Below the pieces are notes generated by a model that worked only from the letters and a program-made list of their open reading frames with translations, did no database searches and had not been told where the DNA came from. Of a stretch of 64,000 nt of DNA, positions 2,757 to 42,447 are shown one piece after another. A program made the translations under genes and the position numbers. The first letter of the stretch is position 1; each line of letters opens with the position of its first letter. The stretch is from IMG/VR virus record IMGVR_UViG_3300030673_000004, positions 1 to 64,000 of that record. One strand, 5' to 3'.

Positions 2757-3773
2757 TTAGACCTCATGAGTAAAACAGGAACGGTAGTTTCTCAATTCAT
2801 CAGCAGCATGCTGGATATAAAGATCATCCAGCCAATCGGACCAAAACGTATAATCAGGCGCAGGCAGATTGTTTGGAATCTCACGAACTCGAAGAATCTC
2901 ATCAGCAATCCACGCCTCAATGAATGGCCGGGACCACTCATTAGCACGAACGCGAAGCAACTCAGCACGACGAGGAGATGGGAGAGTAATACGCCCCGTC
3001 GTCAGATACTCCTCAAGTTCCCACACAACACGAAGAGCATGGTAATAAGCTTTAAGATCCGTTCCATCAGCAGCGGCTGCAGCTTTTGCACGGTCCCCGA
3101 AAGCATTCAATTTATTCACAAGAATAGGATACACTTCAGCCAAACTACGTCCCAGGGGGAAGGCACAATCAGGACCATACAGGTACATCTCACCAGCCTG
3201 AGCACCACGACGAGGTTCTACCGAGAAATGAGTCAGCCCCTCAAAGACACCTGTGTCAACAAACGACTTGAGTTTAAGGTTCACGTGATCACCTTGCGTG
3301 AACGAACCTGTATAAGACAAACAAGCATCCTGCACATGAAGCAATTCGTTGTACTTTTCACCCTTAGCAGAATACTTAGCGGCCTGACCTCGACAGTAAC
3401 CAATGAAGGGCATTACGATATTCGTCTGCAGCTTTTCACGATGCTCTAAAATGTAGTCCCACACAAAAGACGTGAAGATCAGACACGACTTTGGAGCATG
3501 CAGCAACTCCAGAACATAAGTCTGGCCACCAAGAGCCTGTTTGATGAAATGCCGCAAATCATAACACTTATCGTCCACGTCTGACGCGGTATTCTTCGTC
3601 GCCTTATTCGTGCCGTCTTCACGAGCAGGTACATACAAGTGATTAATCAACCGGCGCGAGTCTGCCATGAAGATATTGACAAAATCCGTGTCACTCTCAG
3701 GTGTGTTAGTTCCAAACAAGCGGGATCCGAAGATTACCTTTGAGATAGTACGGCCAAGAGGTAAGTTTTCCAC
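2757..3773 (-). CDS. DNA polymerase beta-superfamily nucleotidyltransferase (T4 NrdC.11/RlaP-like)
   Basis: FGSRLFGTNTPESDTD (GS...DxD) and DLKAYYHALRV; GTG start after the cassette SD. Confidence 0.8.
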   Translation of the reverse strand: MENLPLGRTISKVIFGSRLFGTNTPESDTDFVNIFMADSRRLINHLYVPAREDGTNKATKNTASDVDDKCYDLRHFIKQALGGQTYVLELLHAPKSCLIFTSFVWDYILEHREKLQTNIVMPFIGYCRGQAAKYSAKGEKYNELLHVQDACLSYTGSFTQGDHVNLKLKSFVDTGVFEGLTHFSVEPRRGAQAGEMYLYGPDCAFPLGRSLAEVYPILVNKLNAFGDRAKAAAAADGTDLKAYYHALRVVWELEEYLTTGRITLPSPRRAELLRVRANEWSRPFIEAWIADEILRVREIPNNLPAPDYTFWSDWLDDLYIQHAADELRNYRSCFTHEV

Positions 3774-3780
3774 GAAGTGC

Positions 3781-3832
3781 TCCTTGTTGAGGTGACAAGG
3801 AACAATATACATTAATTATGCTTAGCTGTCAA
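3781..3832 (-). promoter_or_regulatory. repeated sigma70 promoter-leader cassette, diverged copy
   Basis: TTGACA(3832-3827)-17-TATATT(3809-3804) with the same CTTGTCACCTCAACAAGGAG leader. Confidence 0.8.
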
Positions 3833-4345: not shown

Positions 4346-4915
4346 ATGAAGATTAAACTTAGTACTTACGCAAAGAATAACGGCATCCACTATCAGACAG
4401 CTTGGCGGTGGTTTCAGAAAGGTTTAATTCCGGGTGCTACTCAAGCACCAACAGGTACTGTCTTCATAGAAGAGCCAGCAACAGCAACAGCATTAAAGCC
4501 TGTAGTTGTTTGTTACTGTCGGGTATCTAATCAAAGTAGGCGTAAGGAGCTACAGTATCAAGTAGATAGGTGTCTCTCTTATTGCGCTGCTAAAGGCTAC
4601 GCTGTTGATAAAGTGTTCAAAGAAGTTGCTTCCGGCATGAATGACAACCGAAAAGAACTATGGGCAGCTATCAATGCAGAACCAACTATAATTGTGGTTG
4701 AGAATAAAGATCGACTTACTAGATTTGGTTTTAATTACATAGAAAAGTTACTTCTCCCTAAATGTACTATCGAAGTTATATCTCCAGCACAGACAGATGA
4801 ACAAGACCTAATCAAAGATATGATTTCTGTAGTCACATCCTTCTGTTGTCGATTATATGGCTTGCGTAGAGCAAAAAATAAAGTTAATGCTGTAAAAGAA
4901 GCTCTTGAGTTATGA
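4346..4915 (+). CDS. tnpA: IS607 serine-recombinase transposase
   Basis: N-terminal MerR-like HTH (GIHYQTAWRWF), YCRVS catalytic Ser, VVENKDRLTRFG, SFCCRLYGLR. Confidence 0.93.
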   Translation: MKIKLSTYAKNNGIHYQTAWRWFQKGLIPGATQAPTGTVFIEEPATATALKPVVVCYCRVSNQSRRKELQYQVDRCLSYCAAKGYAVDKVFKEVASGMNDNRKELWAAINAEPTIIVVENKDRLTRFGFNYIEKLLLPKCTIEVISPAQTDEQDLIKDMISVVTSFCCRLYGLRRAKNKVNAVKEALEL

Positions 4916-6189
4916 CTTCATTTATTCGCACAAGTCAGCATAGCTTAAAAGACCTTAATAAATGTAAAGCATATGAGCTAAACCTGTTTATCCGTGCTTA
5001 CAGAGAAGCTGTAAATGTTTATGTTGATTTTCTGTGGAATACTAGAATTGAATTTAATACTACTGTTCTTGATGTAAAAGAACATCAGTACAATGTACCA
5101 AAGTTTATACCTAAGCTACTAGAAAATTTTAATACGCTACTAACGTCTAGGGCGTTGAAGTGTGCCTCTACGCAGGCTTGTGGGGTAGTTGCCTCTGTTT
5201 TAGATAAAAGACAGAAAGATGAGAGTAAATTAGAGTGGTTTTATTCTCAAGGTAAAAAGCCATCAGCCGCACTAATTGAAAGATTATCGAAACCACCTGT
5301 ATGTCCTAACACACAAAATATAAACTGCGAACTGAATAGTATTATAGTCAGTGTTGGTGCAGAAATTAATAGTTTTGATTTATGGCTTAATTTTTCAGCG
5401 TTGTTCAAAAGTAAACGAGGTTTTAAGCTGGCTGTGCCCGCTAGGCATCATAGGCAATCTCGGAAATGGCAGGCAAGAGGAAAGTTACTTACATCTATTC
5501 TTTTGAATGAGCACCAATTTAATCTACGTTGGGACGTTGAAGAGCCTAAGAAGCGTACTTCTGGTACTATCGTAGGTGTAGATCAAGGGATTACGGATTT
5601 ATTAACAATATCAAATAATCAAGAGTTTCCAATAGACATTCATGGGTACACACTTACCTCTATTTTGCATAAGATAGCTAGAAAACGTAAAGGGTCTCTA
5701 GCCTTTGCTGCTGCCCAGCAGCACAGAAAGAATTATATTAATTGGTATGTCAAGAAACTTGATTTAGCTGATGTAAAAGAGGTAAAACTCGAAAAGATAA
5801 CAAATATAGGCTACAGAAGAACATCCAGTAGATTTCTTCGTGGCTTTACAAATACGTTGATTAGAGATTCACTAGAACGCCTATGTTTGGAAAGCGGTGT
5901 CCGTTTTTCGCTCATTGACAATGAATTCAATAGTCAACGTTGCAATAAATGCGGTTGGACACAGAAGAGTAATAGAAAAGGTAAGTTGTTTCTTTGTAAA
6001 AACTGTAAGCATGAAGCAGATGCTGATGTAAATGCTTCATGTAACATTTTAATCAGGGATAGCTTAATTCTACTACCTTTTGGGTTCCGTGCTAAAAAGT
6101 TAAACATTAACGGGTTCTTTTGGACTCAAGAACATGTTGCTTTGAAGTACGGGGAAGAGCTTACAGTCCTTCTTAACCGAGAAACTTAA
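4912..6189 (+). CDS. tnpB: TnpB RNA-guided RuvC nuclease
   Basis: RuvC-I VGVDQG, RuvC-II KLEK, Zn ribbon CNKCG..CKNC, RuvC-III DADVNASCNI; ATGA overlap with tnpA. Confidence 0.9.
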   Translation: MTSFIRTSQHSLKDLNKCKAYELNLFIRAYREAVNVYVDFLWNTRIEFNTTVLDVKEHQYNVPKFIPKLLENFNTLLTSRALKCASTQACGVVASVLDKRQKDESKLEWFYSQGKKPSAALIERLSKPPVCPNTQNINCELNSIIVSVGAEINSFDLWLNFSALFKSKRGFKLAVPARHHRQSRKWQARGKLLTSILLNEHQFNLRWDVEEPKKRTSGTIVGVDQGITDLLTISNNQEFPIDIHGYTLTSILHKIARKRKGSLAFAAAQQHRKNYINWYVKKLDLADVKEVKLEKITNIGYRRTSSRFLRGFTNTLIRDSLERLCLESGVRFSLIDNEFNSQRCNKCGWTQKSNRKGKLFLCKNCKHEADADVNASCNILIRDSLILLPFGFRAKKLNINGFFWTQEHVALKYGEELTVLLNRET

Positions 6190-6240
6190 AGTTTATAAAT
6201 ACTTATACTTTAAGTAACTGTTACAACACGTCGCATACAA
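6100..6240 (+). ncRNA. putative TnpB omega RNA (boundaries approximate)
   Basis: Inferred from position at the tnpB 3' end and element right end; hairpin TTAAAGT...ACTTTAA at 6186-6213. Confidence 0.4.
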
Positions 6241-7337
6241 GAGTTCATACTTTCACCGGACTCAACACAAAACCGAAGAGAACAACGATTCCACACAGAG
6301 GGCACGGAAACCATTGGTACCATCTCAAGAATCGTCGGTACATCCGAAACAACACGATCTAAAGCAGATAGCAGAAAAGGTAAGTTCATCGTATTAAACT
6401 TATTCAGCACTTTCCATGGATTGTACCAAGCACCACGAGTAAACAACAAGGAGGTCATTGCTTCAGAATTGTACGAGCCATTAGGAGCAAGAACAGAAAT
6501 ACCATACGGCTCAAAAAAGGCGCAAAGAGCGTCTTTATATGAATCCAACGGACGAACGTACTCTTTGAATACATAATCCGCGCTCACGTATACATAGCCA
6601 CAAGTACTAGCAACTAATCTGGCAAAGTAACTCTTACCGCTGCCAATAGTACCAAAAACTCCAAGGAGATTACGGCAAGTAGCGAGTGACATACCAAATA
6701 AACGAAGTTGCCTAATAGCAGAGCTTGAAATATACGAAAGTTCGGGTGAGCTCACAAAAAAAGTATAAGGCAAAGTCTTTTCTGCTAAGTCAAAAACAAA
6801 CTGCCGCTGCACAAGTTCAGACTTTAGATCCCCTACATCGCGCAAGCCGCGTATAATACTGACTTGATACGAAGGTATAGAGGAGTAATGCTGAAAAACA
6901 TCTGCAAGAGTACCTCTGAACTTAACAGTTTCATAAGACGAGGGAACACCAGGAATAGAAAAAGGGAAAACAGAGAATCCCGATGAAAAAACAGACGAAG
7001 CATTAAGTTTATCTGGATTCTGTCCAATAGCAACAATCACCTTATCAAAAGCATGAGTTGCTTGCTTCACGATATCCAAATGACCTTTATGAAAAGGATT
7101 AAATGAACCAGCGTAGATACCGACACGAAGTGTTTTCTTCTTTAAGCATGCCTCATACGCATCAATTCGTTTGCTATGCTGTCCTTGAAGCAGAGCACGA
7201 ACCAACGAAATATGTCCAGAAACAAACTCAGCATAAGGAAGAAAAGAATACTCAGCATAAATTTTATCGCTATACGATAGTAGGTCCGGAAGATCAGACT
7301 GCAAGACAGAACGATCATACTTATTAAACTTATGCAC
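6210..7337 (-). pseudogene. coaD: HD C-terminal half + phosphopantetheine adenylyltransferase + dephospho-CoA kinase N-terminal part, truncated by IS607
   Basis: YAGSFNPFHKGHLDI, IIRGLR, YISSSAIR (CoaD); GVFGTIGSGKS..SAD (CoaE P-loop). Confidence 0.8.
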
Positions 7338-8693: not shown

Positions 8694-8748
8694 AACTCCT
8701 TGTTGAGGTGACAAGAACAAATATACATTAATTTTGTATGTTTGTCAA
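8694..8748 (-). promoter_or_regulatory. repeated sigma70 promoter-leader-SD cassette, copy 2
   Basis: Identical to 298-352. Confidence 0.85.
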
Positions 8749-8749
8749 G

Positions 8750-9907
8750 TTATCTTAATGTAGCCACAAAAGAAATTAAAGATGCCTTATCTGACAACAG
8801 AGAACGAGCATAGATTGCATCTAGCAGCTTACGCTGAACAACACCACAAGAAGCACCGGAGAATCCCAGGGAAACAAGATCACCACCAGTAAGAGCCAAT
8901 TCCTTAGGGAACAACGGAATATCTTGAGTTGATTTATTCAAGCAACGTGCCTCAAAATAGGATGGCGGACAACAAAAACAGCGCAAAGTTAGAGACACAT
9001 AATTGTATAACTCCCGAGAGCGCACAAGAGAATGCACAGCCTTGGTACTAACACCTGCAGTATAAGAGCGAAAAGCCTGCAGTGCAGATAACTGAATAGA
9101 TGTAGGTGAAACATACGATAAATCTGGCTTACCTGACGCAAATAAGGAGACAAATCCAACAGCATCACGATCAGACAAGGATAGACCTTGAAGATCAACT
9201 GGTTTTGGATCAAAATCTACACCAAACAGAGAAGTACCGATAGTTGTTCGGAGCAACCCACAAAGAACTTCAGTATTGAATGACTTAATAAACGCCTTAT
9301 GCAACTCTGCTTGAATACGCTCAGGTGAGCAACTAAGCAGCGTAGAACTCATCTCAAGTGCCGCCACAAACGTAGTGTCATCAATACTAAACCCGAGACG
9401 ACTCGCAAACTGAACTGCACGAAGAATCCGAAGAGGATCTTCAGTGAACCGATCCCGAGCATCACCCACAGCACGAATCACACCAGATTGCAAGTCAGCG
9501 GCACCGCCAAAGGGATCAATTGTTACACCGCACTCGACATCATAAGCGATAGCATTAATTGTAAAGTCCCGCCGAGCTAAATCATCAACAACAGACAAGT
9601 TACTATCCAGTAGAACTTCAAAGTCACGATGACCGGCACCTGTAGACTGCTCTGTCCGAGGAAGAGCAAAATCATAAGAGTCACCGTCAATGAGAGCAGT
9701 CACAATGCCAAAACTACGTCCTACCTCAGATGCGTGCCCGAGAGAAGATACTGCTTGCTGAACCTGTTCTAGAGATAAGCCAGTAACAAGATAATCAATA
9801 TCCTTTGGAACAAGGCCAAGCACAGCATCTCGCACACAACCACCAACGCGGTACAGGCGACCACCTTGTTGCTCAATGCTAGCTAGAATCTTATGTTCAG
9901 TCTTCAT
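8750..9907 (-). CDS. cca: class II CCA-adding tRNA nucleotidyltransferase
   Basis: VGGCVRDAVLG..KDIDY, DLARRDFTINA, FTEDPLRILRAVQF, SPERI. Confidence 0.88.
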   Translation of the reverse strand: MKTEHKILASIEQQGGRLYRVGGCVRDAVLGLVPKDIDYLVTGLSLEQVQQAVSSLGHASEVGRSFGIVTALIDGDSYDFALPRTEQSTGAGHRDFEVLLDSNLSVVDDLARRDFTINAIAYDVECGVTIDPFGGAADLQSGVIRAVGDARDRFTEDPLRILRAVQFASRLGFSIDDTTFVAALEMSSTLLSCSPERIQAELHKAFIKSFNTEVLCGLLRTTIGTSLFGVDFDPKPVDLQGLSLSDRDAVGFVSLFASGKPDLSYVSPTSIQLSALQAFRSYTAGVSTKAVHSLVRSRELYNYVSLTLRCFCCPPSYFEARCLNKSTQDIPLFPKELALTGGDLVSLGFSGASCGVVQRKLLDAIYARSLLSDKASLISFVATLR

Positions 9908-12407: not shown

Positions 12408-12446
12408 GTACGATATATAGTAAAAATCTACTGCACAAACAAGCCG

Positions 12447-13214
12447 TTACAGCAAAGAACCTTGAAAAACACACTGACGAGTAGGTTTACTACCACGCAA
12501 GAAGGACAAGGCATAGGAGTCACTAAAGGCATAAGCAAACCTATGCTTAAACATACGGCCAAAGTTCGACAGATCAATCGGGCCGCGAAGAGCTTCATAA
12601 GCACCATGAACATCACGCATAGTAAAGGTATTGTCCTTAGGGCTCACAGCCAGCCCACGCAGGATGTCTTCATCCCACGCATGCTTTTGCAGATGAGCGA
12701 GCATCTCAGACAAAATAGTATGGTGATCAAAAGCCAGTGTACCAGCAAGAGCAGTAGAGACAGTCACCCACTGAGCAGTAGCTGCGTCATCATTTGCTTT
12801 AATTGGTAATGAATCTGCCTGATCGTGGTGCAGCAAACAGAAATAGGATACATCTGCGGTGTACCACCGAGGATCCCGATCATAGGAAGCATATGTCTTA
12901 AACTGATGAAGAGGCACAGTACCCATAGGAATACTGGTTTCTTCTTCCAACTCACGCAATGCTGCGTGGTCTACACTCTCCTTGTCCTGAATGTTAACAA
13001 AACCACCAGGAAAGGCAAAGCAACCAGCGTAGGGAGCAAACTTCCGTTCAATCAACAGCACCTGCAGCCGATCCAGGTTCCGAGTGCTCGGATCCAATCG
13101 GAAAATCACAATATCAGCGGTAAGCGTAGGACGTTCAAACACGGTTGGGTCGTAACCAGAATCCGGGTAAAGGTCCAAATACGATCCGTGCTTTCCAGAA
13201 ATACGTTCAGTCAT
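12447..13214 (-). CDS. nrtR: NrtR-type Nudix (ADP-ribose) + winged-HTH regulator
   Basis: PGGFV..ESVDHAALRELEEET, RDPR, LAFDH; C-terminal FTMRDVHGAYEAL...SNFGRMF...RGSKP. Confidence 0.8.
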   Translation of the reverse strand: MTERISGKHGSYLDLYPDSGYDPTVFERPTLTADIVIFRLDPSTRNLDRLQVLLIERKFAPYAGCFAFPGGFVNIQDKESVDHAALRELEEETSIPMGTVPLHQFKTYASYDRDPRWYTADVSYFCLLHHDQADSLPIKANDDAATAQWVTVSTALAGTLAFDHHTILSEMLAHLQKHAWDEDILRGLAVSPKDNTFTMRDVHGAYEALRGPIDLSNFGRMFKHRFAYAFSDSYALSFLRGSKPTRQCVFQGSLL

Positions 13215-13809
13215 TGTAAAGCCCCAATTTGTAACAAAGTTTAACCGTTTCCGGTGCCATTAATTTAAGTAACTCACTATCTGGTGCCTTAGCAGCAAAA
13301 GATTTACGAGCTTGTGTTGAAGATATACTCTGAAAATCAGCAGGAAGAGCAGGTAACAGCGTGTGGAAACTGGATTTAAGCCATGGCAAGGATACACTGG
13401 AACCCATGCCACGAGGGAGCACAATAATAGAGAACTCCCGAATGAGAGATTTTCCATTAATCCAATGATCCTCAATCTGTTCAGCTTGGTCTTGACCAAC
13501 AATCAAAGAAACAGCATCCACACCAGGAGACATCTTAGCATAGTTAAGGAGTTCATAGGTACTCCCAGTGCTACTACTAAGCTCAGACTCAAGCAGACTT
13601 ACATGAGTGCAAGGAATACGCTGAAAAAGACTCTCACACAAATGCATACGAATGCTGTAGTCAACCAGATCTTTGCCATAAGCATGTTTAAGAACGGGAA
13701 TGATCCAAACCCTATCCACATTTGGACAAGTGGCAAGGGTTTGACACACTACGGCGCGATGCGCTAGTGTTGGAGGATTAAACGACCCACCGTAGAGTGC
13801 CACACGCAT
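13207..13809 (-). CDS. nadD: nicotinate-nucleotide adenylyltransferase
   Basis: ALYGGSFNPPTLAH, LIVGQD..W, ISSTQAR. Confidence 0.88.
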   Translation of the reverse strand: MRVALYGGSFNPPTLAHRAVVCQTLATCPNVDRVWIIPVLKHAYGKDLVDYSIRMHLCESLFQRIPCTHVSLLESELSSSTGSTYELLNYAKMSPGVDAVSLIVGQDQAEQIEDHWINGKSLIREFSIIVLPRGMGSSVSLPWLKSSFHTLLPALPADFQSISSTQARKSFAAKAPDSELLKLMAPETVKLCYKLGLYND

Positions 13810-14627
13810 TAGCCAAACACCTTACCCTGCAGAACACTCTCTACGGTAGCAACAGTGCAGCCTTGCTTAGCCATGTTCTCAAGAAAACGAATCCCTTGCT
13901 CTTCATAGCCGGTGACATCCGACATACAATCTTCCAAGAGCACGATCTTCTTCAGATCAAAACCCAAGTTGTAGTCTTGAATGCGCTGAACCATCTGCTC
14001 AACCGAGCACCGAACACAATGCGAACGAGCCTCACCACCAACGACGATGGGCAGATTACCGAAAAGGAGATTTCCAAGCAGATTGTCATTGAAATCTGCC
14101 AAGATATTCCCATGCCCTTTATACTCCGGCTCAAAAATGCCAAAGCTCTCCAAGTCCTGATGGTATCCCTTCTTGGCCATAGTGGCAATACGGCCCGGAC
14201 CACTGTTCTCCCACGAATGCACAGCAGCAACAAGGTTGTTACTCAGTTCATAGCTCTGTGTGCCAGGAACACAATGAACAGGCCAAATCATGCTACCACG
14301 AATCGGATCAATGTAACGCTTTGCGTATTCCTGCTTTTTCGGATCGGCAGCTTGAATAGCACCACTCTCAAGAGCAAGAAGGTTAACTAGGGTAAAGGGC
14401 TCTGGAGAAACCCCTTCCGAAGTCAGCCACCAACCAGGATGACCAATGTGAGCAATAGGGTGCTGATCTACAGTAAGAAAAATATCAACAATATCCTCCT
14501 CTGCCTCCGTAATGAAATTCGAGAATCGAACGACATCCTCAAAAGCACCAGCAGGGCACAGCGGCTCGCCAGGGCAAACAAATGCCTTCTGAAAATCAAT
14601 TCCAAAAACCTTAAACGGTGTACCCAT
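13809..14627 (-). CDS. pncA: nicotinamidase (isochorismatase family)
   Basis: IDFQKAF, DQH, WPVHCV, KG, GEARSHCV; start at 14627 after AAGGAG. Confidence 0.85.
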   Translation of the reverse strand: MGTPFKVFGIDFQKAFVCPGEPLCPAGAFEDVVRFSNFITEAEEDIVDIFLTVDQHPIAHIGHPGWWLTSEGVSPEPFTLVNLLALESGAIQAADPKKQEYAKRYIDPIRGSMIWPVHCVPGTQSYELSNNLVAAVHSWENSGPGRIATMAKKGYHQDLESFGIFEPEYKGHGNILADFNDNLLGNLLFGNLPIVVGGEARSHCVRCSVEQMVQRIQDYNLGFDLKKIVLLEDCMSDVTGYEEQGIRFLENMAKQGCTVATVESVLQGKVFG

Positions 14628-14654
14628 CAGAAATCTCCTTCTCAGTGAATGCAC

Positions 14655-16715
14655 TTAACCAACAGTCAATAACTTAGCCTTGAGCTCCTTGTATGCCTTA
14701 GTGTAGTAAACACCACCAATAGCTTCTCGAAAATCGAACCCATAAGCTCTACGGCTCACGACAAGTACAGGCGGAGCCTGAACACGCTTCACAATGCCCA
14801 TGCCCTTAAACAAGCCCCACCAACGTTCAAGATCTGCAACGAAATCTTCCGCTGTTGGGAAAAGATACTTAAACTCTGTATATTTGTCAACATCAATCTC
14901 AAGATGTTCCAAAAGATCACCCATAATATAATGATTAAGGGTATCCTCAACATTATCGCGATTCCATGGCTCAACCCACGAAGCAAATAGCTTGTCGTGG
15001 TACCAGTAGGTGATAGGATCACCCTTACCTGCATCAACATTCTGATCAGCACTCAACTCCGCCGAGGGCTTAAGTGTGTACAAGGAGTCAGGAATGATCT
15101 TATGATCAAAAGTGTTCTCCACAGCACGAAGAGTTTCATAAACTTCATGCTTCCAGAGATCCGCTAGAGGAGCAAAATACCCCATGTGATCACCGCCCAT
15201 AGTGCAGTAACCAACAGTAAGCTCAGCTTTGTTTCCATTGTTGGGAAACACCGCATGAAACCCAGCAGCCAACATAGCCTGAACACCAGCACCACGCATA
15301 CGAGCCTGGATATTCTCCGTATCATCCCAGAACTCCGTGGCCTTAACGTCCGACTCCCACAGCCCAACATGAACACTGGTCATGAAGTCCGTAACAGACT
15401 TCCCAATAGGAATCTCCAAGTAGCGAATACCCAAATTATCTGCAATTGTTTTTGCAATACCCTTGGTTGTTTCGCTATTAAATTCAGTAGGCATATTAAC
15501 AGCGATCACGTTTTCAGCACCAAGAGCCTTTACATGAAGCAACGTGGACAGTGCCGAGTCCACACCACCACTCAACCCAATCACAGCACGCTTGATGCCA
15601 CCCTGCTCACAAAACTTCTGGATGCCGTAAGCCAAAACGTCATGAAGTTCTGGGTCTTGCTGCTCAGTCTGCCAAGGCGACTCAGCAGCCACTTGGACAC
15701 TCGTAGGAGTAACAGTAACCAAACCCATGCATTCCCTGAGAGGGGGTAGCGCACAGATAACAGCACCGTCCATATAAACAGTAGAGCTCCCGTCAAAAAC
15801 AAAAACATCCTTACCGTTGTTCTGAATACCAACACTGTTGACATAGATCAGAGCATTAAACTCTTGCGAATGCTGAGCAAAACGACGATTGCGAGCACCA
15901 TTCTTGCCTTGAGTAAATGGTGAGCAACTCAAGTTTACATGCACATGCATCTTCCCTGGAGCCGACACGCTGCGACCCCGGCAGTTATGAATAGGCTTAG
16001 TAGCATAATCATCATCCCAACCATCTTCACAGATCGACGGTGTGATATACAAATTGTCTTCACTGTAGATAGACATTATGGGTGTATGAGCAGTGCCGCT
16101 ACGAAAATAACGCTTATCTTCAAACTCACGATAGTTTGGCAGATTCGTTTTATGGTACTCCATAGCGTACCTGCCTAGGATTACAGCGCTATTAAAACGC
16201 TCCCTGCGACCATCTTCGTAATTCGTATCACCCAAGGTCACAGAACCTAAAATAGCAGTAATACCAAGTTCCAGAGCAACAAAGGAAATATCCTGTTTTA
16301 GGTACCCCAGACAATCCTTAAGGAAAGCTGCATCCTCCCAGTCATCACCTACCATGTAGCCAGGAAGAGCCATTTCAGGAAAAACAGCAACCTGAGCACC
16401 AGCATCCTTGGCAAGGTGCAGGTACTTAATGATCTTAGCGGCATTCAAATCAGGGCGCTTTGCAACAACCTCAATCTGACAGATAGCGATAGTCTTTGCA
16501 GTAGTAAGCATTTCGTCGTCCTCTAATTCGTCGTTAATTCCACAAAGCTTAACCTGGTCCCATAGCAGATAATCTTCCTCAGCATCATCTGCCACATGGA
16601 GAAACCCACAGGTACCATTTGCGTGCTTTGGCTTTTGTGCATCTAATCCCCAGTAAGGACATTTGCCTCTGCCATCATAGCAATAGATACCTGTAGGAAT
16701 TTCCAGATGGCACAT
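14655..16715 (-). CDS. nadE: glutamine-dependent NAD+ synthetase with a 68-aa Cys-rich N-terminal extension (alternative start 16511)
   Basis: Nitrilase domain FPEM, KTNLPNYREFEDKRYF, ICED; synthetase GLSGGVDS, ENIQARMR, NKAELTVGYCT, PSAEL. Confidence 0.92.
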   Translation of the reverse strand: MCHLEIPTGIYCYDGRGKCPYWGLDAQKPKHANGTCGFLHVADDAEEDYLLWDQVKLCGINDELEDDEMLTTAKTIAICQIEVVAKRPDLNAAKIIKYLHLAKDAGAQVAVFPEMALPGYMVGDDWEDAAFLKDCLGYLKQDISFVALELGITAILGSVTLGDTNYEDGRRERFNSAVILGRYAMEYHKTNLPNYREFEDKRYFRSGTAHTPIMSIYSEDNLYITPSICEDGWDDDYATKPIHNCRGRSVSAPGKMHVHVNLSCSPFTQGKNGARNRRFAQHSQEFNALIYVNSVGIQNNGKDVFVFDGSSTVYMDGAVICALPPLRECMGLVTVTPTSVQVAAESPWQTEQQDPELHDVLAYGIQKFCEQGGIKRAVIGLSGGVDSALSTLLHVKALGAENVIAVNMPTEFNSETTKGIAKTIADNLGIRYLEIPIGKSVTDFMTSVHVGLWESDVKATEFWDDTENIQARMRGAGVQAMLAAGFHAVFPNNGNKAELTVGYCTMGGDHMGYFAPLADLWKHEVYETLRAVENTFDHKIIPDSLYTLKPSAELSADQNVDAGKGDPITYWYHDKLFASWVEPWNRDNVEDTLNHYIMGDLLEHLEIDVDKYTEFKYLFPTAEDFVADLERWWGLFKGMGIVKRVQAPPVLVVSRRAYGFDFREAIGGVYYTKAYKELKAKLLTVG

Positions 16716-16716
16716 A

Positions 16717-18009
16717 TCAGGCAGCCAACCCGTAAGTGCGCTGCAGGATGTCTTCGTGACGGCTCTCGTTGAAGTAGTCACCTACCATGTAGGTACGCTT
16801 CAGAGCATCTTCATGCACAGCGTCCTCACACATAGCCTTACCAGCAGTGTCGCTAACCTTTGCCACTGGACGATCATTGACTTCAACAGCCTTCATCACG
16901 AGTTGAAGTGCCTTTACACCCAAGTCATTAGTGAAGTCCGTACCAATGCCAAACGATACCTTAGCACGACCAGCAAACACCTTGAGCAGATTCTCACAAG
17001 TATCTGGATTAAGGCCATCCGAGAACATCAGCACCTTCGTCTTAGGATCAATGTGGAGTTTCTCGTAGTGCCGAATAATCTTCTCACCCCAAATGAACGG
17101 ATCGCCCGAGTCATGACGAGCACCAATGTAACTCTGTGCCAAGAGCATGTCAAAGTCACGAAGGAAAGCATCAACACCAACGATATCCGAAAGAGCAATG
17201 CCCGTCTTGGCACGGTAAAAATGCTGCCACAGATCAAGCATATACTTATTCGAGCTGCCAAGCGTCACATTATCCAGAGCCTGACCGACCTCCAAGAACT
17301 CGTGGGCCATTGTGCCACTGAACGGCGTCTTAAACTCGACAGCCATCTGAACATTCGACGTGCCCAAAAAGACACCAGGAATATCAGCAAACTCCTTGAC
17401 AAGATTTTCAACCACGTAGTGCTGCCAAGCAAACGATGCACGACGACGAGTACCAAACTCGCTGAACGTAAATGCATACTGCTTAGCCAGATCCTTATAA
17501 CGCTTGATCTTGTCCTCAAGTCGCTGCATGCCCTCGTACAGATCCAAATCCTTGTACACATCCCGGAAATATGCTTCCTGCGTCATGGTCATGGCATGGA
17601 TCTCAAAATTGGTATTGTACCGAGCTGGACCATGCGTCCGGATGTCCAAAAGATCACCATTGGGCTCAATCGTGATGAAGTCACGGTTGAGCTGAGCCAA
17701 GCGCAGAAATTCAAGGTAAGGACGAGTCATATAAGGAACAGCGTGCAAACGAGCAAGTGTCCCTGGACTCATGCGACGAGTACAAGCCAAGTCCATCTGG
17801 TTGCTCACCTCAGCAGCGTACTTTGCCAGGTTGACACCAGTAGTACGATTGTGAAACTTCTTCGACATCGTAACATGAGGAAGAAGCGCATCATAAACCT
17901 GACCCATAGTCAGGAAGTAGAAGTCGATGTCATCGAAGGCATGGTTCCGCCCCGCAAGCTTCGACTGATGCTTCTGTGCGAATTCTTCCAAAGTAATATG
18001 TTCTGCCAT
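16717..18009 (-). CDS. pncB: nicotinate phosphoribosyltransferase
   Basis: DFYFLTM, EFGTRRR, GTSNV, GTMAHE, RHDSGDP, FSDGL, FGIGT, KVSD. Confidence 0.9.
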   Translation of the reverse strand: MAEHITLEEFAQKHQSKLAGRNHAFDDIDFYFLTMGQVYDALLPHVTMSKKFHNRTTGVNLAKYAAEVSNQMDLACTRRMSPGTLARLHAVPYMTRPYLEFLRLAQLNRDFITIEPNGDLLDIRTHGPARYNTNFEIHAMTMTQEAYFRDVYKDLDLYEGMQRLEDKIKRYKDLAKQYAFTFSEFGTRRRASFAWQHYVVENLVKEFADIPGVFLGTSNVQMAVEFKTPFSGTMAHEFLEVGQALDNVTLGSSNKYMLDLWQHFYRAKTGIALSDIVGVDAFLRDFDMLLAQSYIGARHDSGDPFIWGEKIIRHYEKLHIDPKTKVLMFSDGLNPDTCENLLKVFAGRAKVSFGIGTDFTNDLGVKALQLVMKAVEVNDRPVAKVSDTAGKAMCEDAVHEDALKRTYMVGDYFNESRHEDILQRTYGLAA

Positions 18010-18029
18010 GATTGAATCTCCTACTTGGG

Positions 18030-18050
18030 TTAGAGTAACTTTTACTCTTT
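18030..18050. promoter_or_regulatory. candidate NrtR operator
   Basis: AGAGTAA-CTT-TTACTCT inverted repeat with a GT-N7-AC core, between the GTAAAT element (18058-18063) and the pncB SD. Confidence 0.65.
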
Positions 18051-18057
18051 AAGTAGA

Positions 18058-18110
18058 ATTTACTACAAAATTCTAAAAAAACAAGAGGTCATGTACAAAA
18101 AACCGTAAAT
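18058..18110. promoter_or_regulatory. divergent pair of GTAAAT promoter elements
   Basis: ATTTAC 18058-18063 facing pncB; GTAAAT 18105-18110, 7 nt before the helicase ATG at 18118. Confidence 0.55.
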
Positions 18111-33184: not shown

Positions 33185-33766
33185 ATGAGATCAATTGCAT
33201 TTATGGGGCCATCCCGTGGAGGTAAGTCCTCTATCGCTAAAGAAATTGCCAGACAACTAGATCCCAATGTTTACGGAAACATTGGGATGCTATCCTTTGC
33301 GGACACATTAAGAGAAATAGCAAGTACACGCTTTGGGTGGACAGGTGAAAAGACCCCAAAGCAACGAGACATAATCCAAAAAGCCTCAGAATCCTGGAAA
33401 CGACAACACGGTGAAGATATCTTTGCAATAGACTTACTGGTCCGTGCAAAATGTAAACCAGCTTGCTACGATACTATTATAATTGATGATCTGAGACATG
33501 GCTGCGAACTAGGAGCCCTACGCAATAACACACAGGCAACAATACTGTGTATAGATGAAGAGCAAGCGGAACACGTCTGGGCTCAGGCATTCAGCGCACA
33601 TAAAACAGTAGATGATGAATTCTCATGGGCGGTACATAGGTCAGAGCTAGAATGGCGAGGCTTTCGACATTTGTACCAACATATAAATAATGATAAAACT
33701 TCGCCATATGGTTTTGACATATCTGTAAATAAAATCATGCAGATCTTACATCAGGGAGATAACTAA
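33185..33766 (+). CDS. deoxynucleoside monophosphate kinase-like P-loop kinase
   Basis: GPSRGGKS, SFADTLR, IIDDLRH, HRSE. Confidence 0.75.
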   Translation: MRSIAFMGPSRGGKSSIAKEIARQLDPNVYGNIGMLSFADTLREIASTRFGWTGEKTPKQRDIIQKASESWKRQHGEDIFAIDLLVRAKCKPACYDTIIIDDLRHGCELGALRNNTQATILCIDEEQAEHVWAQAFSAHKTVDDEFSWAVHRSELEWRGFRHLYQHINNDKTSPYGFDISVNKIMQILHQGDN

Positions 33767-34881
33767 TGCCGGAAGACATGCTAAACATTGGAGACTTTGA
33801 CGACATCCTAGCAGATGCTCCGGTCCAAGAAGCTCCTATTGAGGACACCGCACCACATGCCCTAAAAATAGGCTTCATCGGTGCAGGACAAGCTGGATGC
33901 AATCTAGCTAATACGTTCTGGGATACCTGTGGATATCGTCGTGTTATTCTGTTTAATACTACAGGAAACGATGTCCGTGGTTCTGCTGTCCCAGAAGATC
34001 TTCAAGTGATTGCAGAAGGATTTGATGGGGCTGGTAAAAATCGAGATGTTGGACAGAGAGCAGCCGAACAAAGTGCAACAAAGCTGCTTGCAACCATGTC
34101 TAAGCGGTTTGGTTCGGACACAGACTACATCATCGTCCTGGCATCTGGTGGCGGTGGAACAGGGTCTGGGGCGGCTGTAAAACTAGCCGAATACGGGCGT
34201 CAATATCTATGCTCCAAAGGACTTTCGCCGGAAGAAGCAGTTAAAAGAGTTGGTTTTATCATCATGCTGCCTACAGATTCAGAAGGATCCGTATCCAAAA
34301 GTAATGCCCTCTCGCTAGTAAATGATGTAACCACATTTGGTGGTTCACCCGTAATGTACATTGATAATGGACGAGTTTCATCACTTGTCAAGAGTACACT
34401 GGGCGGGTGGTACTCACAAGCAAACACCATGATTGCACGCCTATTTGATATGTTCAACTTCCTAGCAAGCAAGGATTCCAGTCGGCAAGCTTTTGACCCC
34501 CAAGATTATCGAACGGTTCTATCGTCGGGTTTGGTAAGTGTTGGGCTCACACGCCTAAACAGATACACTAACGACATGGATCTAGCTAATGCCCTACAGC
34601 AGAATCTTAAAACAAGTTTGCTTGTTGATGATGTTGGCTTGTCTTCCGGGACTCATGCAGCTATTATAGTCCTAGGTGATGATGCTACACTTAATGAGAT
34701 TCCTATGACAGCACTAGATAATGTACGAACGGTCATCTCATCTCTTCTAGGATCTGGTCCAAGTAAACCTGTTACCATTCATACCGGTATCTATGCAAAC
34801 AAGTCACCTGTTATTCAAGTATTCTCTATGCTGGGTGGCCTAAGTTTTCCAGCATCCAAACGAAGGAAATTAGGGGGTTGA
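33766..34881 (+). CDS. tubulin/FtsZ-family GTPase (PhuZ/TubZ-like)
   Basis: GFIGAGQAGCN, FNT, DGAGKN, GGGTGSG signature, IDN. Confidence 0.88.
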   Translation: MPEDMLNIGDFDDILADAPVQEAPIEDTAPHALKIGFIGAGQAGCNLANTFWDTCGYRRVILFNTTGNDVRGSAVPEDLQVIAEGFDGAGKNRDVGQRAAEQSATKLLATMSKRFGSDTDYIIVLASGGGGTGSGAAVKLAEYGRQYLCSKGLSPEEAVKRVGFIIMLPTDSEGSVSKSNALSLVNDVTTFGGSPVMYIDNGRVSSLVKSTLGGWYSQANTMIARLFDMFNFLASKDSSRQAFDPQDYRTVLSSGLVSVGLTRLNRYTNDMDLANALQQNLKTSLLVDDVGLSSGTHAAIIVLGDDATLNEIPMTALDNVRTVISSLLGSGPSKPVTIHTGIYANKSPVIQVFSMLGGLSFPASKRRKLGG

Positions 34882-39045: not shown

Positions 39046-42000
39046 TTAAAAGCCTTCAGCTACCTCGTCAAACGAAGGATCAGATTCATCTAAACCAACA
39101 CAGGACGACCACCCATGAGACAAGTGCTTTTCCTTGAACTCGGCGCAACCGCAGGGTACTTCCTCTGTCGTACCATCTGCATTTGTAGTCTTCTTCTTTT
39201 TAGTGCAAATCGTTGGATGCTCCGACCATTGATAGGCAGTACCACAGTGCTTACAGACCCACTGCTTTCCTTGACTTACATCCATATCAATGTCTAAGGG
39301 CACGGACATCTTATGCCCGAACAATTCTTCAATAACCTGAGGCGTCTTAGTAACAAAAATATAGCGAGTTAGTCTAGCAATATACCTAAGATCCTCTGCC
39401 GTATTTGGGCACTCTATAAGGACAGAGTCATGCACAGCATTCACTAACTTGTACACCTCATGTACACCCTGATTATACAGCTCTTCAAACAGAAGAGATG
39501 TAGCAAGAGAAGCATAATCACCCGTGGCGGACTGAATAGGTGTATTAACCGCCCTACGAAAATCACGCTGCATCAATGAACGATTATTAGAGTACACATT
39601 ACGAAGCCAGCGTCGTCGTCCAAAAAATGTCTCAACATAGCCATGAGCTTTAGCAAATTCCACACGATCATCAAGCCAAGCCTTACCAACAGAAAACTTA
39701 GAATAGAAACTTTGGCACAACTCCTCAGTCTCCTCTACCGTCTTACCAATTTGTGCCGCAATGCTAGGTGTACCTCTAACATACATCAAACCAAACGTAA
39801 TTGATTTTGTTGCTGTTCGGAGTGTCTTCTCAACCTTCTGACCTTCAGGTACCCCAAACATCAAACGAGCATTCTGCACATGAATGTCCGACATAGCATC
39901 AGACTTAGCTTTTATCTCAGGCTGCGGATCCTTAAGAAAAGCACATTTCATTGCATAAGCGTCAATAAAATTCTGCACAAGACCAGGATCTCGTGACATT
40001 TCGGCCCACATACGAACTTCAGCGGCACAGAAGTCTGCCTGAAAAATGACTTTTCCTGGAGGTGCTATAAAGATATTCTTAATAGCCTTTTTTTCAATAC
40101 CATCACCACGGGGAACCTGCTGCATATTTGGATCTACACAATTATGGACGCACAACTCACCGGCAAAAAAGTTATGGTGATCCTCTACAGTGATGTCATA
40201 AACAGGTACAGAAACATTTAAGCGTTCAACACGAATAATCTTATGATTATTAGGTACAGTATTTTTTAGTATAGCAGTATGGTAACTGATATGCTCATGG
40301 GCTGTGAGCATAGAAAGGTTACTAGGATTGTTATTATAGTGATCCCAATCCTTATGGTGGATATGATAACCCTTAGGAATTTTTACCTTATTAGCATGCT
40401 CAAACACAAAACGATGATCGGCGTACTCCTCATGAACTCCAGTAAACAGTAAAGAACCTTTACGAATACGCTGAAGAGCATAAACACTAGTACCCACAGC
40501 TAAAGCACTTGCAGGCACCCACCCCTGATCTACGGTCTTTACTAAATGATCATCAGTAAGATCTAAATAACCATAATTTACACTTTTACCGGTGTGTCCA
40601 GATTTCCAGTGCAGTCGAATGATCTCACGAACACCTGTTTGCCAGGCTTTTGTAACACGTGAAAGTGTAGGTTTATTGTCAGATGTCAAGCAGTAAGCAA
40701 TATCACCAACTTGCACCTGTTCAATAGGTATACCCTTAGGATTTAAGTTGAGATTTCGGACAATCTCAACCAAAGTACCTTTAGCAATACAACTCAAACG
40801 ACCAGTCTGGGTACCGTGTAAAAGAAACTTTCCATGAATACGCCCATCTACATAATCTGTCTTACCTGGATTTGTAAAACTAGCATTAAATTTGCGGATG
40901 TACGACGAATCCAGCTTTTGCAGACCTTGATACTCAGAAAACAAAGCTACAACAGGATTTCCGATGTTCTCTTCCTGAAAATCAGAATCGGCAGAATAAT
41001 TACCCTCATCATTAGCGGGATACTTAAAACCATTATCACTTGTGAAAAACAGAGCCGTCTTGTGAGTGTGAGAATTTAGATCAAGCACCCAGGGCATAGT
41101 AAACGTTGTCTGCACACCAACACTATTAGTCAATAGCTCCCTATTAACCGCCTGACATACAGGATCCTTCTTAAGCTCAGTAGAGATATCACGCACTCTC
41201 TTCAGAATAGGAGAAGCAGGTGATCCCAACTGGATAAGATGTCGCAAATCAGCCATCATACCAAAATGAGTCATAGCACTATAGCATTTGGTTTTACGAC
41301 TATCAGATACAAGCAACATAGTCATGAACTCGTTTTCAATGCCTAGATTACGTGCTTGTGCAATTAAAGCATGCAATCCGCGCAATGTAGCATACGGATC
41401 CATACCGGAGTAAGAGACAAATTTCGGTAAAGGTAACCCTAGAAGAGTGCCATCTTTACGGGCATCCAACATCTCCTGATCATAGTGGTGAAACCCAAGA
41501 AACTCTACTACAAGCTGTTTTAGACCATTCGGTGCCTGACCACGCATGGTATAAACACGGTCTTTTCTAGCCGAATCCAAAAAATGCATACCAAGCATTG
41601 TATCAACAACAGGACGACGAGGCATAACATGATACTTACAATAGAACTGAGCATTATCAAACTGTGCATTATGTAGAGTCCAATAGGAAATCTTAGAAGA
41701 ACCATCATCTAATAAATCATGCACCATCTGATCAATCTGGGCATTCTCATCTATTGAGAAAGGATTATCATCATGCTGTCTTAATAAGACATAGCCATGA
41801 TTCGGATCATGCGCAAACTGGATAGAAGCTAATTGTGTATTATGGGCATAGTTCAAATTACCTGTTTCAGTATCAAGACCAACAGGACCAGCGTGCTCAT
41901 ATCTAAGAAAATCTAAGTACTCTTTAACAAGCTTAAATGTATCTAAATTTATCTCCTCACCCTTAAGATGATAAGGATTGTTTATAAGAAACCTTACCTT

Positions 42001-42447
42001 AGTAAGATTTTCACCAAGAAACAAAAAATCCTCCACACGTGCATAGATAGCACGATATGTAGGAAAGCAATGAACAGGAACGGAACCCATACCATAGTCA
42101 AATGTATGTATTGACCACTGGATTTCATAGTTCTCCCATTTACCTATCGAGGGTACCAAGAATTTTGACATCCATGGACCTAAAGCAACAAGAGATCGTG
42201 GTTTATACTTACGAAAAGCCTCTAATAAGGCAGCACCGTTTGCACGAGCAACAGCCATAAGGTCGTCAACTTCACCAACCTGATCAGCAAGTGTAATAAT
42301 TACAAAGCTATCCAAGTAATGAGATAGATCATTTATGAACTTGATACCAACAGGATCGTTAAGATTCGCGACTTTTTCTTGGGGCTGTATTAAGATAGCC
42401 TGTACTCTGCCGTCCAATGCTTGTCCAAGTTTTTCGTACACTAACAT
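39046..42447 (-). CDS. polA: family A DNA polymerase with 3'-5' exonuclease and intein
   Basis: LDTET, HNAQFD, YSGMD (exo); TGRLS, ADFCAAEVR, RTATKSITFGLMY, NTPIQS, VHDS. Confidence 0.93.
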   Translation of the reverse strand: MLVYEKLGQALDGRVQAILIQPQEKVANLNDPVGIKFINDLSHYLDSFVIITLADQVGEVDDLMAVARANGAALLEAFRKYKPRSLVALGPWMSKFLVPSIGKWENYEIQWSIHTFDYGMGSVPVHCFPTYRAIYARVEDFLFLGENLTKVRFLINNPYHLKGEEINLDTFKLVKEYLDFLRYEHAGPVGLDTETGNLNYAHNTQLASIQFAHDPNHGYVLLRQHDDNPFSIDENAQIDQMVHDLLDDGSSKISYWTLHNAQFDNAQFYCKYHVMPRRPVVDTMLGMHFLDSARKDRVYTMRGQAPNGLKQLVVEFLGFHHYDQEMLDARKDGTLLGLPLPKFVSYSGMDPYATLRGLHALIAQARNLGIENEFMTMLLVSDSRKTKCYSAMTHFGMMADLRHLIQLGSPASPILKRVRDISTELKKDPVCQAVNRELLTNSVGVQTTFTMPWVLDLNSHTHKTALFFTSDNGFKYPANDEGNYSADSDFQEENIGNPVVALFSEYQGLQKLDSSYIRKFNASFTNPGKTDYVDGRIHGKFLLHGTQTGRLSCIAKGTLVEIVRNLNLNPKGIPIEQVQVGDIAYCLTSDNKPTLSRVTKAWQTGVREIIRLHWKSGHTGKSVNYGYLDLTDDHLVKTVDQGWVPASALAVGTSVYALQRIRKGSLLFTGVHEEYADHRFVFEHANKVKIPKGYHIHHKDWDHYNNNPSNLSMLTAHEHISYHTAILKNTVPNNHKIIRVERLNVSVPVYDITVEDHHNFFAGELCVHNCVDPNMQQVPRGDGIEKKAIKNIFIAPPGKVIFQADFCAAEVRMWAEMSRDPGLVQNFIDAYAMKCAFLKDPQPEIKAKSDAMSDIHVQNARLMFGVPEGQKVEKTLRTATKSITFGLMYVRGTPSIAAQIGKTVEETEELCQSFYSKFSVGKAWLDDRVEFAKAHGYVETFFGRRRWLRNVYSNNRSLMQRDFRRAVNTPIQSATGDYASLATSLLFEELYNQGVHEVYKLVNAVHDSVLIECPNTAEDLRYIARLTRYIFVTKTPQVIEELFGHKMSVPLDIDMDVSQGKQWVCKHCGTAYQWSEHPTICTKKKKTTNADGTTEEVPCGCAEFKEKHLSHGWSSCVGLDESDPSFDEVAEGF
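40141..40791 (-). mobile_element. 217-aa intein with HNH endonuclease in PolA
   Basis: GRLS|CIAKGT ... VYDITVEDHHNFFAGELCVHN|C; HIHHKDWDHYNNNPSNL. Confidence 0.9.

Follow-up and report, generated by a model that had tools for sequence, protein, structure and literature searches.

Bacterial NrtR proteins (Shewanella oneidensis SO1979, PDB 3GZ5/3GZ6/3GZ8; Synechocystis Slr1690; Rodionov et al. 2008, PMC2330246) combine a Nudix domain of the ADP-ribose (ADPR) pyrophosphatase lineage with a C-terminal winged helix. Their genes are clustered with NAD salvage genes, and their palindromic operators overlap the promoter. A GT-N7-AC core, 21-bp palindromes and ADPR as anti-repressor are described for the family (PMC2330246). 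SO1979 and Slr1690 have perturbed Nudix signatures and no activity, whereas NuhA of Synechococcus PCC 7002, an NrtR-family member with an intact signature, has high ADPR pyrophosphatase activity (as cited in PMC2330246). Enterobacterial NadR is also an NAD-pathway enzyme fused to a DNA-binding domain that represses NAD genes at a palindrome, but the folds are unrelated (NMNAT/RNK plus HTH) and NAD acts as co-repressor, rather than ADPR as anti-repressor. In phages, NAD resynthesis from the products or precursors left after NADase defence has been described as NARP1 (Adps+Namat), NARP2 (Nampt plus NMNAT/Nudix) and NARP3 (PnuC plus NadR-like) (bioRxiv 10.1101/2024.02.11.579819; PMC13464706). 'NAD-jumbo phages' carry pncB-nadD-nadE clusters (Microbiome 2024, PMC11662467).

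Here we analyzed a window of 64,000 nucleotides (positions 1 to 64,000 of IMG/VR record IMGVR_UViG_3300030673_000004) from a 375-kb uncultured jumbo phage. It encodes the deamidating PncA-PncB-NadD-NadE route rather than a NARP route, and shares its Preiss-Handler gene cluster with the NAD-jumbo phages. The additions here are the pncA gene, an NrtR-like regulator and its putative operators. The NAD-jumbo phage paper does not mention Nudix or NrtR at all, and no dedicated metabolite-sensing repressor came up in what we read of the NARP papers (both abstracts, and term searches of PMC13464706). We found no published phage NrtR, and no paper in the library searched mentions NrtR as phage-encoded.

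A predicted nicotinamide-to-NAD operon and its NrtR-like last gene

The operon, pncB-nadE-pncA-nadD-nrtR, is a co-directional, overlapping gene set on the minus strand. The first gene (16717..18009) encodes nicotinate phosphoribosyltransferase, PncB (NF003704 391.6 bits, cutoff 379; PF04095 and PF17767). It is followed by nadE (14655..16781), for a glutamine-dependent NAD synthase with CN-hydrolase and NAD_synthase domains (PF02540 3.2e-36, PF00795 1.3e-13, NF010588 299.8 bits). The true start of nadE is probably internal, because the longest ORF overlaps pncB by 65 nt; orthologues are 617-698 aa. The 281-aa product of the third gene (13809..14654) is predicted to be a divergent nicotinamidase of the isochorismatase fold, PncA, and probably starts at the second Met, about 9 codons in. 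A profile of eight phage orthologues hits the nicotinamidase structures 2H0R (E=6.3e-12) and 2WT9 (4.6e-6). Invariant motifs (IDxQ, DxHPxxHIGH, KKG and SHC) resemble the nicotinamidase Asp/Lys/Cys and His-rich sites, and would correspond to catalytic and metal-binding residues. One related locus, L016 (related loci are designated by L numbers), has a Pfam isochorismatase gene at the same position. The fourth gene, nadD (13207..13809), encodes nicotinate-mononucleotide adenylyltransferase (TIGR00482 1.1e-19; PF01467). By annotation only, these genes provide a complete enzymatic route from an NADase product to NAD.

The last gene (12447..13214) encodes a 255-aa protein with a Nudix domain (about residues 28-160), a linker helix and a predicted C-terminal winged helix (about 180-253). 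The Nudix domain (PF00293 E=3.8e-14) belongs to the ADPR pyrophosphatase lineage. It matches 3GZ8, the NrtR Nudix domain with ADPR, at E=2e-15 and with Foldseek TM scores of 0.79-0.80. After NrtR itself, the best Nudix matches are NadM-type (NMNAT/Nudix) and NUDT5-type ADPR pyrophosphatases. A phmmer match to NrtR 3GZ5 (E=2.5e-17) spans both domains (residues 19-221). The AF2 model (pLDDT 85.4) has an alpha-beta-alpha-alpha-beta-beta C-terminal domain consisting of H182-189, a short strand, H199-210, H215-225 and hairpin 226-235/245-253, with pLDDT above 90. The best full-length Foldseek hits are all NrtR-family regulators: 2FML, AraR 5BS6 and S. oneidensis NrtR 3GZ5/3GZ6, the last solved with DNA. 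Alignment of the C-terminal domain to bona fide NrtR_WHD using hhalign gives a probability of 96% (E=4.8e-9). However, Pfam PF21906 (NrtR_WHD) gives no hit even at E<=10, and the NCBIfam NrtR model NF050029 scores 84.6 bits, far below its cutoff of 400, covering model positions 11-188 of 245. The protein is a divergent relative, not an equivalog. Two clade members, L014 and L016, score PF21906 directly. The recognition helix is also divergent from that of bacterial NrtR (SNFGRMFK vs RNFRRKIL).

The E-X7-R-E-L-x-E-E core of the Nudix box, including the catalytic REx2EE, is present and invariant in the clade. The earlier note considered the box to look intact, but it is nearly rather than strictly canonical. 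Compared with the signature GX5EX7REUXEEXGU, and with NuhA, the protein has G-X7-E instead of G-X5-E and ends in T-S-I, with Ser in place of Gly in the final 'GU'.

Palindromes in the pncB promoter

The palindrome described in the earlier note is present where it was placed. The perfect 7+3+7 inverted repeat AGAGTAACTTTTACTCT occurs at 18032-18048, between the -10-like TAAATT (18057..18062, minus strand) and the AGGAG Shine-Dalgarno sequence of pncB (18022-18018), whose ATG is at 18009. The -35 element, TTGTTT, is at 18079-18084 (16-nt spacer), and +1 is inferred near 18050. Relatives have TTGACA-N17-TAAATT or TAACTT at the same place, although an automated promoter scan instead lists TGTACA-16-TAGAAT at 18097-18070. 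As a lone palindrome the repeat is not beyond chance, as the window contains 6 perfect 7-nt-arm repeats with a 3-nt spacer and 121 with spacers of 0-10.

What exceeds chance is the core AGTA-N5-TACT, which has 4 exact matches in 64 kb against 1.37 expected. Two of these lie 18 bp apart in the 102-bp intergenic region upstream of pncB. The other two (29826 and 48205) are inside ORFs and are treated as chance, as is a hit at 10105 in L002, the closest relative, which is part of a terminator-like hairpin. The extended core GAGTA-N5-TACTC contains the GT-N7-AC that defines NrtR sites (PMC2330246). Operator-like site 1 (18051..18065, core 18052-18064) overlaps the -10 hexamer. The 'GTAAAT element' of the earlier note (18063-18058, minus strand) is part of this second copy of the motif. 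Operator-like site 2 (18032..18048, AGAGTA-N5-TACTCT) is the palindrome of the note, at about +3 to +19 of the predicted transcript. These sites (15-17 bp) are shorter than those of bacterial NrtR and are arranged as a tandem pair.

Megablast of the operon against GenBank phages found no match, and scans of viral and metagenome contigs with the NrtR protein or its alignment returned only the source contig. Relatives were instead reached through the protein database and exact-protein look-ups. The pair of sites recurs in the pncB promoters of five diverged relatives, L002, L005, L013, L017 and L018 (pncB 57-91% identical), where the spacing varies (18, 25, 20, 23 and 25 bp) and the flanks are unconserved. 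Site 1 is an invariant block in the six-lineage alignment, although part of its conservation could simply reflect -10 function. Site 2 is conserved in L005, L013 and L018, but is degenerate in L002 (AGAGTAG-ATC-TTACACC) and in L017. L010 and L011, with pncB 75% identical, lack the motif, but their regulator gene is off the contig. L005 carries the motif again on an internal pncA promoter and on a coaE promoter. The pncA promoter of L013 has AGTA-N4-TACT and resembles the general promoter family, and is left unassigned.

Within the window, the motif is not a general phage promoter element. The other sigma-70-like promoters belong to a TTGACA-N3-ATACAAA...TATATT family that lacks it, and near-matches are not enriched window-wide. 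The motif is also absent from the fetched loci of L006 and L015, which have orthologous Nudix genes (174 and 185 aa) without the winged helix. Only L006 shows an operator-free pncB promoter, as L015 has no intergenic region before pncB; L006 also has no winged-helix remnant. More distant clade members with a Pfam-recognizable NrtR_WHD have different palindromes before their NAD operons (ATTATTGTC-N5-GACAATAAT with a GT-N7-AC core in L016, and TTATCA-N3-TGATAA in L014), and their recognition helices also differ. Nothing convincing was found when we looked for an operator in the AT-rich region near the bona fide NrtR of a 636-kb phage (LR756504.1).

Two other elements of the intergenic region were set aside. 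The inverted repeat TAGAATTT-N6-AAATTCTA (18054-18075) is not seen in the relatives' upstream sequences and is treated as incidental. A GTAAAT at 18105..18110 (plus strand), 7 nt before the ATG (18118) of the divergent helicase gene, is a separate conserved element (an invariant ATTTAC block in the six-lineage alignment) and not part of the NrtR circuit. Site 2 would be transcribed and folds to a 7-bp hairpin of -6.2 kcal/mol, but this is not unusual (z = -1.43). Across the six lineages there are no compensatory changes: 4 of 7 pairs never vary, two are left unpaired in some lineages and one changes on one side only. No Rfam family, riboswitches included, reaches its gathering score in the leader (noise hits only, best E=2.9, far below the gathering scores).

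Proposed regulation and alternatives

The interpretation in the earlier note, a switch in which the phage detects host NAD destruction through ADPR and only then induces NAD rebuilding, is supported in part. Two of the three conditions that it had named as refuting were examined, and neither refuted the idea: the palindrome is conserved upstream of pncB in related phages, and structure prediction gives an NrtR-type winged helix. A phage NrtR/operator circuit is well supported. ADPR as effector rests only on homology to the ADPR-specific Nudix lineage. Induction only upon ADPR is unlikely, because nrtR is the last gene of the operon that it would repress, so that a virulent phage enters with no phage-made repressor. 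A link to Thoeris, DSR or SIR2-HerA defenses, also suggested in the note, is plausible but conjectural. A scan of GTDB genomes for the host returned only distant, taxonomically scattered NrtRs (at most 43% identical over a fair stretch).

The explanation that we favor, with moderate confidence, is autorepression that ADPR relieves. In this view, the operon lets the phage rebuild NAD from nicotinamide (Nam to NA to NaMN to NaAD to NAD) and is probably transcribed at entry from a sigma-70-type promoter. By analogy with the family, the winged-helix domain would then bind, as a dimer, the two tandem operators, one covering the -10 hexamer and the other the first roughly 20 transcribed bases, so that a bound repressor would block RNA polymerase and the operon would be shut down by its own product. 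It would stay open, or reopen, when the Nudix domain binds ADPR, the product of NAD cleavage. The conserved REx2EE core suggests that the same protein also hydrolyses ADPR to AMP and ribose-5-phosphate. That would reset the signal, so expression would follow the rate of NAD breakdown. Our analysis shows the domain architecture, the pathway genes, and the position, conservation and co-occurrence of the operators, whereas DNA binding, repression, ADPR as effector, hydrolase activity and any role against NADase defenses are inferences.

Two alternatives appear unlikely but survive. In the first, the repressor and operators are as described but the effector is not ADPR. NAD itself could act as co-repressor, as reported for Corynebacterium glutamicum NdnR, which binds DNA more tightly with NAD (PMC6800001), or another ADPR-derived nucleotide could be sensed, such as phospho-ADPR or cyclic ADPR isomers from Thoeris. 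The NrtR family also includes the arabinose-sensing AraR, which is among the best structural matches, so ligand identity is not fixed by the fold. Against this are the ADPR pyrophosphatases among the best Nudix matches, and the finding that ADPR was the best anti-repressor for the characterized NAD-linked NrtRs (PMC2330246). In the second, considered equally unlikely, the protein is above all an ADPR pyrophosphatase that feeds ribose-5-phosphate and AMP back into the pathway, like the Nudix half of phage NadM/NatV, and the winged helix only provides ligand-independent autorepression as a timer that switches the early operon off. The invariant REx2EE core is consistent with this, as are the orthologues without any DNA-binding domain that keep the same last position in the operon (L006 and L015). 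However, it does not explain why a ligand-binding regulator family was recruited, and the box departs from the strict signature; the two roles are not mutually exclusive. Least likely is that the palindromes are promoter elements, sites for a host or other phage factor, or an mRNA 5' hairpin affecting stability or translation: although site 1 overlaps the -10 hexamer, site 2 can form a hairpin and such repeats are common in the window, the folding, covariation and Rfam results argue against an RNA element, the same motif also occurs upstream of the transcription start, and it tracks the presence of the winged helix.

It is possible, though tentative, that a virulent jumbo phage uses a virus-encoded metabolite sensor to read host immune NADase activity, through ADPR or a related ADPR-derived signal, and keeps its NAD-rebuilding operon derepressed only while NAD is being destroyed. 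This would be a demand-coupled, self-resetting counter-defense switch, with natural 'sensor-less' variants (Nudix only, no operator) in sister phages. The sister phages that lost both the DNA-binding domain and the operator give a natural comparison.

Phage NAD-reconstitution pathways are a recent and active topic. A conserved phage-encoded NrtR with its own operators would show that some phages regulate such a pathway with a small-molecule sensor borrowed from bacterial NAD homeostasis. It also offers a compact part, a repressor plus a 15-17-bp operator, that may respond to ADPR. The same family also appears next to NadM and NAMPT genes in the 636-kb phage LR756504.1, so phage NrtRs may be more widespread.

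Gene content and the NAD operon

The phage represented by IMG/VR contig IMGVR_UViG_3300030673_000004 is an uncultured jumbo phage of 375.5 kb, and has no close relative in GenBank phages. In the first 64 kb of the contig, five tightly packed or overlapping genes lie on the minus strand between 18009 and 12447. These encode, in order, PncB (NAPRTase; NF003704, 391.6 bits), a glutamine-dependent NAD synthase (nadE), a 281-aa protein with no Pfam hit, NadD, and a 255-aa Nudix protein. A profile built from eight orthologues of the 281-aa gene matches solved nicotinamidases (2H0R at E=6.3e-12 and 2WT9 at 4.6e-6). Motifs resembling the Asp/Lys/Cys and His-rich sites of nicotinamidases, which would correspond to the catalytic and metal-binding residues of that family, are invariant. 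This gene is therefore pncA, and by annotation the operon encodes the whole deamidating route from nicotinamide to NAD.

The surrounding genes form a jumbo-phage replication module that includes a DnaB-like helicase, a tubulin-like protein, ThyX, PolA and RecA with inteins, a topoisomerase IV subunit A homologue and two sigma-like factors. The tubulin/FtsZ-family protein is PhuZ-like (33766-34881). The family-A DNA polymerase carries an intein with an HNH endonuclease and the RecA-like gene carries an intein with a LAGLIDADG endonuclease (39046-42447 and 44266-46887). Also present are a cytidylyltransferase-like plus CoaE fusion (the last two steps of CoA synthesis), a CCA-adding/poly(A) polymerase, an RlaP RNA-repair protein and a TnpB (Cas12f1-like TNB) gene (6210-7337, 8750-9907, 2757-3812 and 4912-6189). 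The sigma-factor gene just downstream of the Nudix gene has its own promoter-like sequence (12408-12446), TTGTTT-N17-TATATA, that ends 6 nt before the ATG in a leaderless-like arrangement. No terminator separates the two genes, so read-through from the NAD operon is possible.

Paired operator-like sites in the pncB promoter

The earlier note drew attention to a palindrome, AGAGTAA-CTT-TTACTCT, and this observation proved correct: the repeat is exactly at 18032-18048. On the minus strand, a -35-like TTGTTT (18084-18079) is followed by a 16-nt spacer, a -10 hexamer TAAATT (18062-18057, overlapping the GTAAAT element of the earlier note), an inferred +1 near 18050, the palindrome at about +3 to +19, AGGAG (18022-18018) and the pncB ATG (18009). 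A consensus scan proposed a different promoter, TGTACA-16-TAGAAT at 18097-18070. We prefer the TAAATT promoter because relatives have TTGACA-N17-TAAATT or TAACTT at the aligned position. Taken alone, the palindrome is not significant, as the 64-kb window contains 6 perfect 7-nt-arm repeats with a 3-nt spacer and 121 with spacers of 0-10.

The core AGTA-N5-TACT, which includes GT-N7-AC, has four exact matches in the window against 1.37 expected. Two of these are 18 bp apart in the same 102-bp intergenic region, at 18034-18046 (site 2) and 18052-18064 (site 1), and the other two are inside ORFs. The upstream copy, site 1, overlaps the -10 hexamer. An 8+6+8 inverted repeat, TAGAATTT-N6-AAATTCTA (18054-18075), also overlaps site 1, but it is specific to this phage and is not seen in the upstream sequences of the relatives.

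Related loci were reached through searches of a protein database and by locating the contigs that encode the exact proteins found. Six lineages share the synteny helicase <- -> pncB-nadE-pncA-nadD-Nudix: the window and the related loci L002/L003, L005, L018, L013 and L017, the PncB proteins of which are 91% to 57% identical to that of the window. Each of these lineages has two copies of GAGTA-N5-TACTC in the pncB promoter, at most one mismatch from that pattern, whereas the expectation per locus is 0.2-0.6. The spacing between copies is 18, 18, 25, 25, 20 and 23 bp. L013 has a weaker third copy. Site 2 is degenerate in L002 and L017 but keeps GTA-N5-TAC. In an alignment of the six intergenic regions, three blocks are invariant, namely the two operator-like sites and an ATTTAC block (GTAAAT on the other strand) next to the helicase start, and everything between these blocks varies.

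The third block corresponds to GTAAAT at 18105-18110 (+) in the window and occurs at the aligned position in L002, L005, L013, L017 and L018, 7-10 nt before the ATG of the divergent helicase gene, with no Shine-Dalgarno sequence. The same GTAAAT-N7/8-ATG arrangement precedes the genes starting at 27520 (+) and 61211 (-). This element may be a phage-specific promoter that gives leaderless mRNAs.

Other sigma-70-type promoters in the window lack the operator-like motif and form a different, early-type family read on the minus strand, TTGACA-N3-ATACAAA-N7/8-TATATT. It includes two identical 39-nt copies 8.4 kb apart (312-350 and 8708-8746), and members were also identified upstream of the genes ending at 11742, 53014 and 62127. 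The operon is being remodelled among the relatives (L005 4907-5926, L017 1541-2701 and L013 16138-17379). In L005, a radical-SAM gene is inserted between nadE and pncA, and an exact copy of the site-1 promoter sits in front of pncA. In L017, a TnpB gene is inserted between pncB and nadE, and L013 has an IS605-type TnpB nearby. A further GAGTA-N5-TACTC-type site in L005 (10093-10107) overlaps the -10 of a coaE (dephospho-CoA kinase) promoter that ends 1 nt before the ATG. The putative NrtR regulon may therefore extend to CoA synthesis in that phage.

The Nudix protein and its C-terminal domain

The 255-aa protein matches Shewanella oneidensis NrtR (3GZ5) at E=2.5e-17 over residues 19-221, and also matches E. 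faecalis 2FML and AraR. The Pfam NrtR_WHD model does not score, and the NCBIfam NrtR model scores 84.6 bits against a cutoff of 400. Nevertheless, three results show that the C-terminal domain is an NrtR-type winged helix. The AF2 model (pLDDT 85.4, pTM 0.83) has a confident C-terminal domain with three helices, a short strand and a beta-hairpin wing. The best Foldseek matches are all full-length NrtR-family regulators, including the NrtR-DNA complex 3GZ6. Finally, hhalign of the C-terminal domains against bona fide NrtR_WHD sequences gives a probability of 96%. More distant members of the same phage clade share the N-terminal NLYPxSxYDPT extension; loci L014 and L016 encode such members, and both score PF21906 directly. 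The catalytic E-X7-REL-x-EE core is invariant across the clade, but in the window protein the loop is G-X7-E and the final Gly is Ser. Hydrolase activity is therefore possible but not assured.

The regulator and the sites vary together. Loci L006 and L015 carry orthologous Nudix genes of 174 and 185 aa, 48-49% identical, that end just after the Nudix domain, and neither locus contains the motif. The L006 pncB promoter is a plain TTGACA-N17-TAGATT, and no winged-helix remnant follows the L006 Nudix gene. As L015 has no intergenic region before pncB, only L006 tests the promoter. L016 has a recognition helix closer to that of canonical NrtR, and its NAD operon is preceded by a 23-bp palindrome, ATTATTGTC-N5-GACAATAAT, with a GT-N7-AC core. 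L014 has TTATCA-N3-TGATAA. Presence of the DNA-binding domain, sequence of the recognition helix and sequence of the palindrome therefore change together. We regard this as the strongest computational evidence available that the palindromes are operators of this protein.

ALTERNATIVES

A proposed NrtR circuit in phages

By analogy with NrtR (PMC2330246), a dimer would bind each operator and occlude the -10 and +1 region, and binding of ADP-ribose to the Nudix domain would weaken DNA binding. The earlier note proposed that NAD rebuilding is induced only once ADP-ribose signals destruction of host NAD, an interpretation that is supported in part and that the gene order modifies. The regulator gene, nrtR, is the last gene of the operon it would control, and a separate promoter-like sequence precedes the downstream sigma gene. 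At entry no phage-made repressor exists, although a host NrtR or a virion-packaged protein acting at time zero cannot be excluded, given that the host is unknown. The operon should therefore be expressed first and then autorepressed, with ADP-ribose from NAD cleavage keeping it open. If the Nudix core is active, the protein would also destroy its own inducer, and expression would then follow the rate of NAD breakdown. The phage NrtR/operator circuit is well supported by the comparative evidence, whereas DNA binding, repression and hydrolysis are inferred, and ADP-ribose sensing and a role in counter-defence are plausible inferences.

Alternatives remain possible, in which NAD acts as a co-repressor, another ADPR-derived ligand is sensed, or autorepression is purely ligand-independent. 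An mRNA hairpin is not supported, as the fold is -6.2 kcal/mol with z = -1.43, there are no compensatory changes (4 of 7 pairs never vary, two are left unpaired in some lineages and one changes on one side only), the same motif also occurs upstream of the transcription start, and no Rfam family matches the leader.

The phage NAD reconstitution pathways NARP1, NARP2 and NARP3 have been described (bioRxiv 10.1101/2024.02.11.579819; PMC13464706), as have jumbo phages with pncB-nadD-nadE clusters (PMC11662467), although the latter paper does not mention Nudix or NrtR. Among the titles examined from a full-text literature search for NrtR together with phage, none concerns a phage-encoded NrtR. The Aravind-lab survey mentions NrtR-like Nudix-HTH factors only in bacterial ARG-containing (ADP-ribosylglycohydrolase) systems that are predicted to counter viral ADP-ribosylation.

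We consider the protein studied here to be a divergent phage form of the NrtR system. A bona fide NrtR (Nudix plus PF21906, 73 bits) was also identified in the 636-kb uncultured phage LR756504.1 (8995-13671), where it sits beside NadM-like and NAMPT genes (NARP2-type), although no operator was identified there. Phage NrtRs are therefore not confined to this clade.
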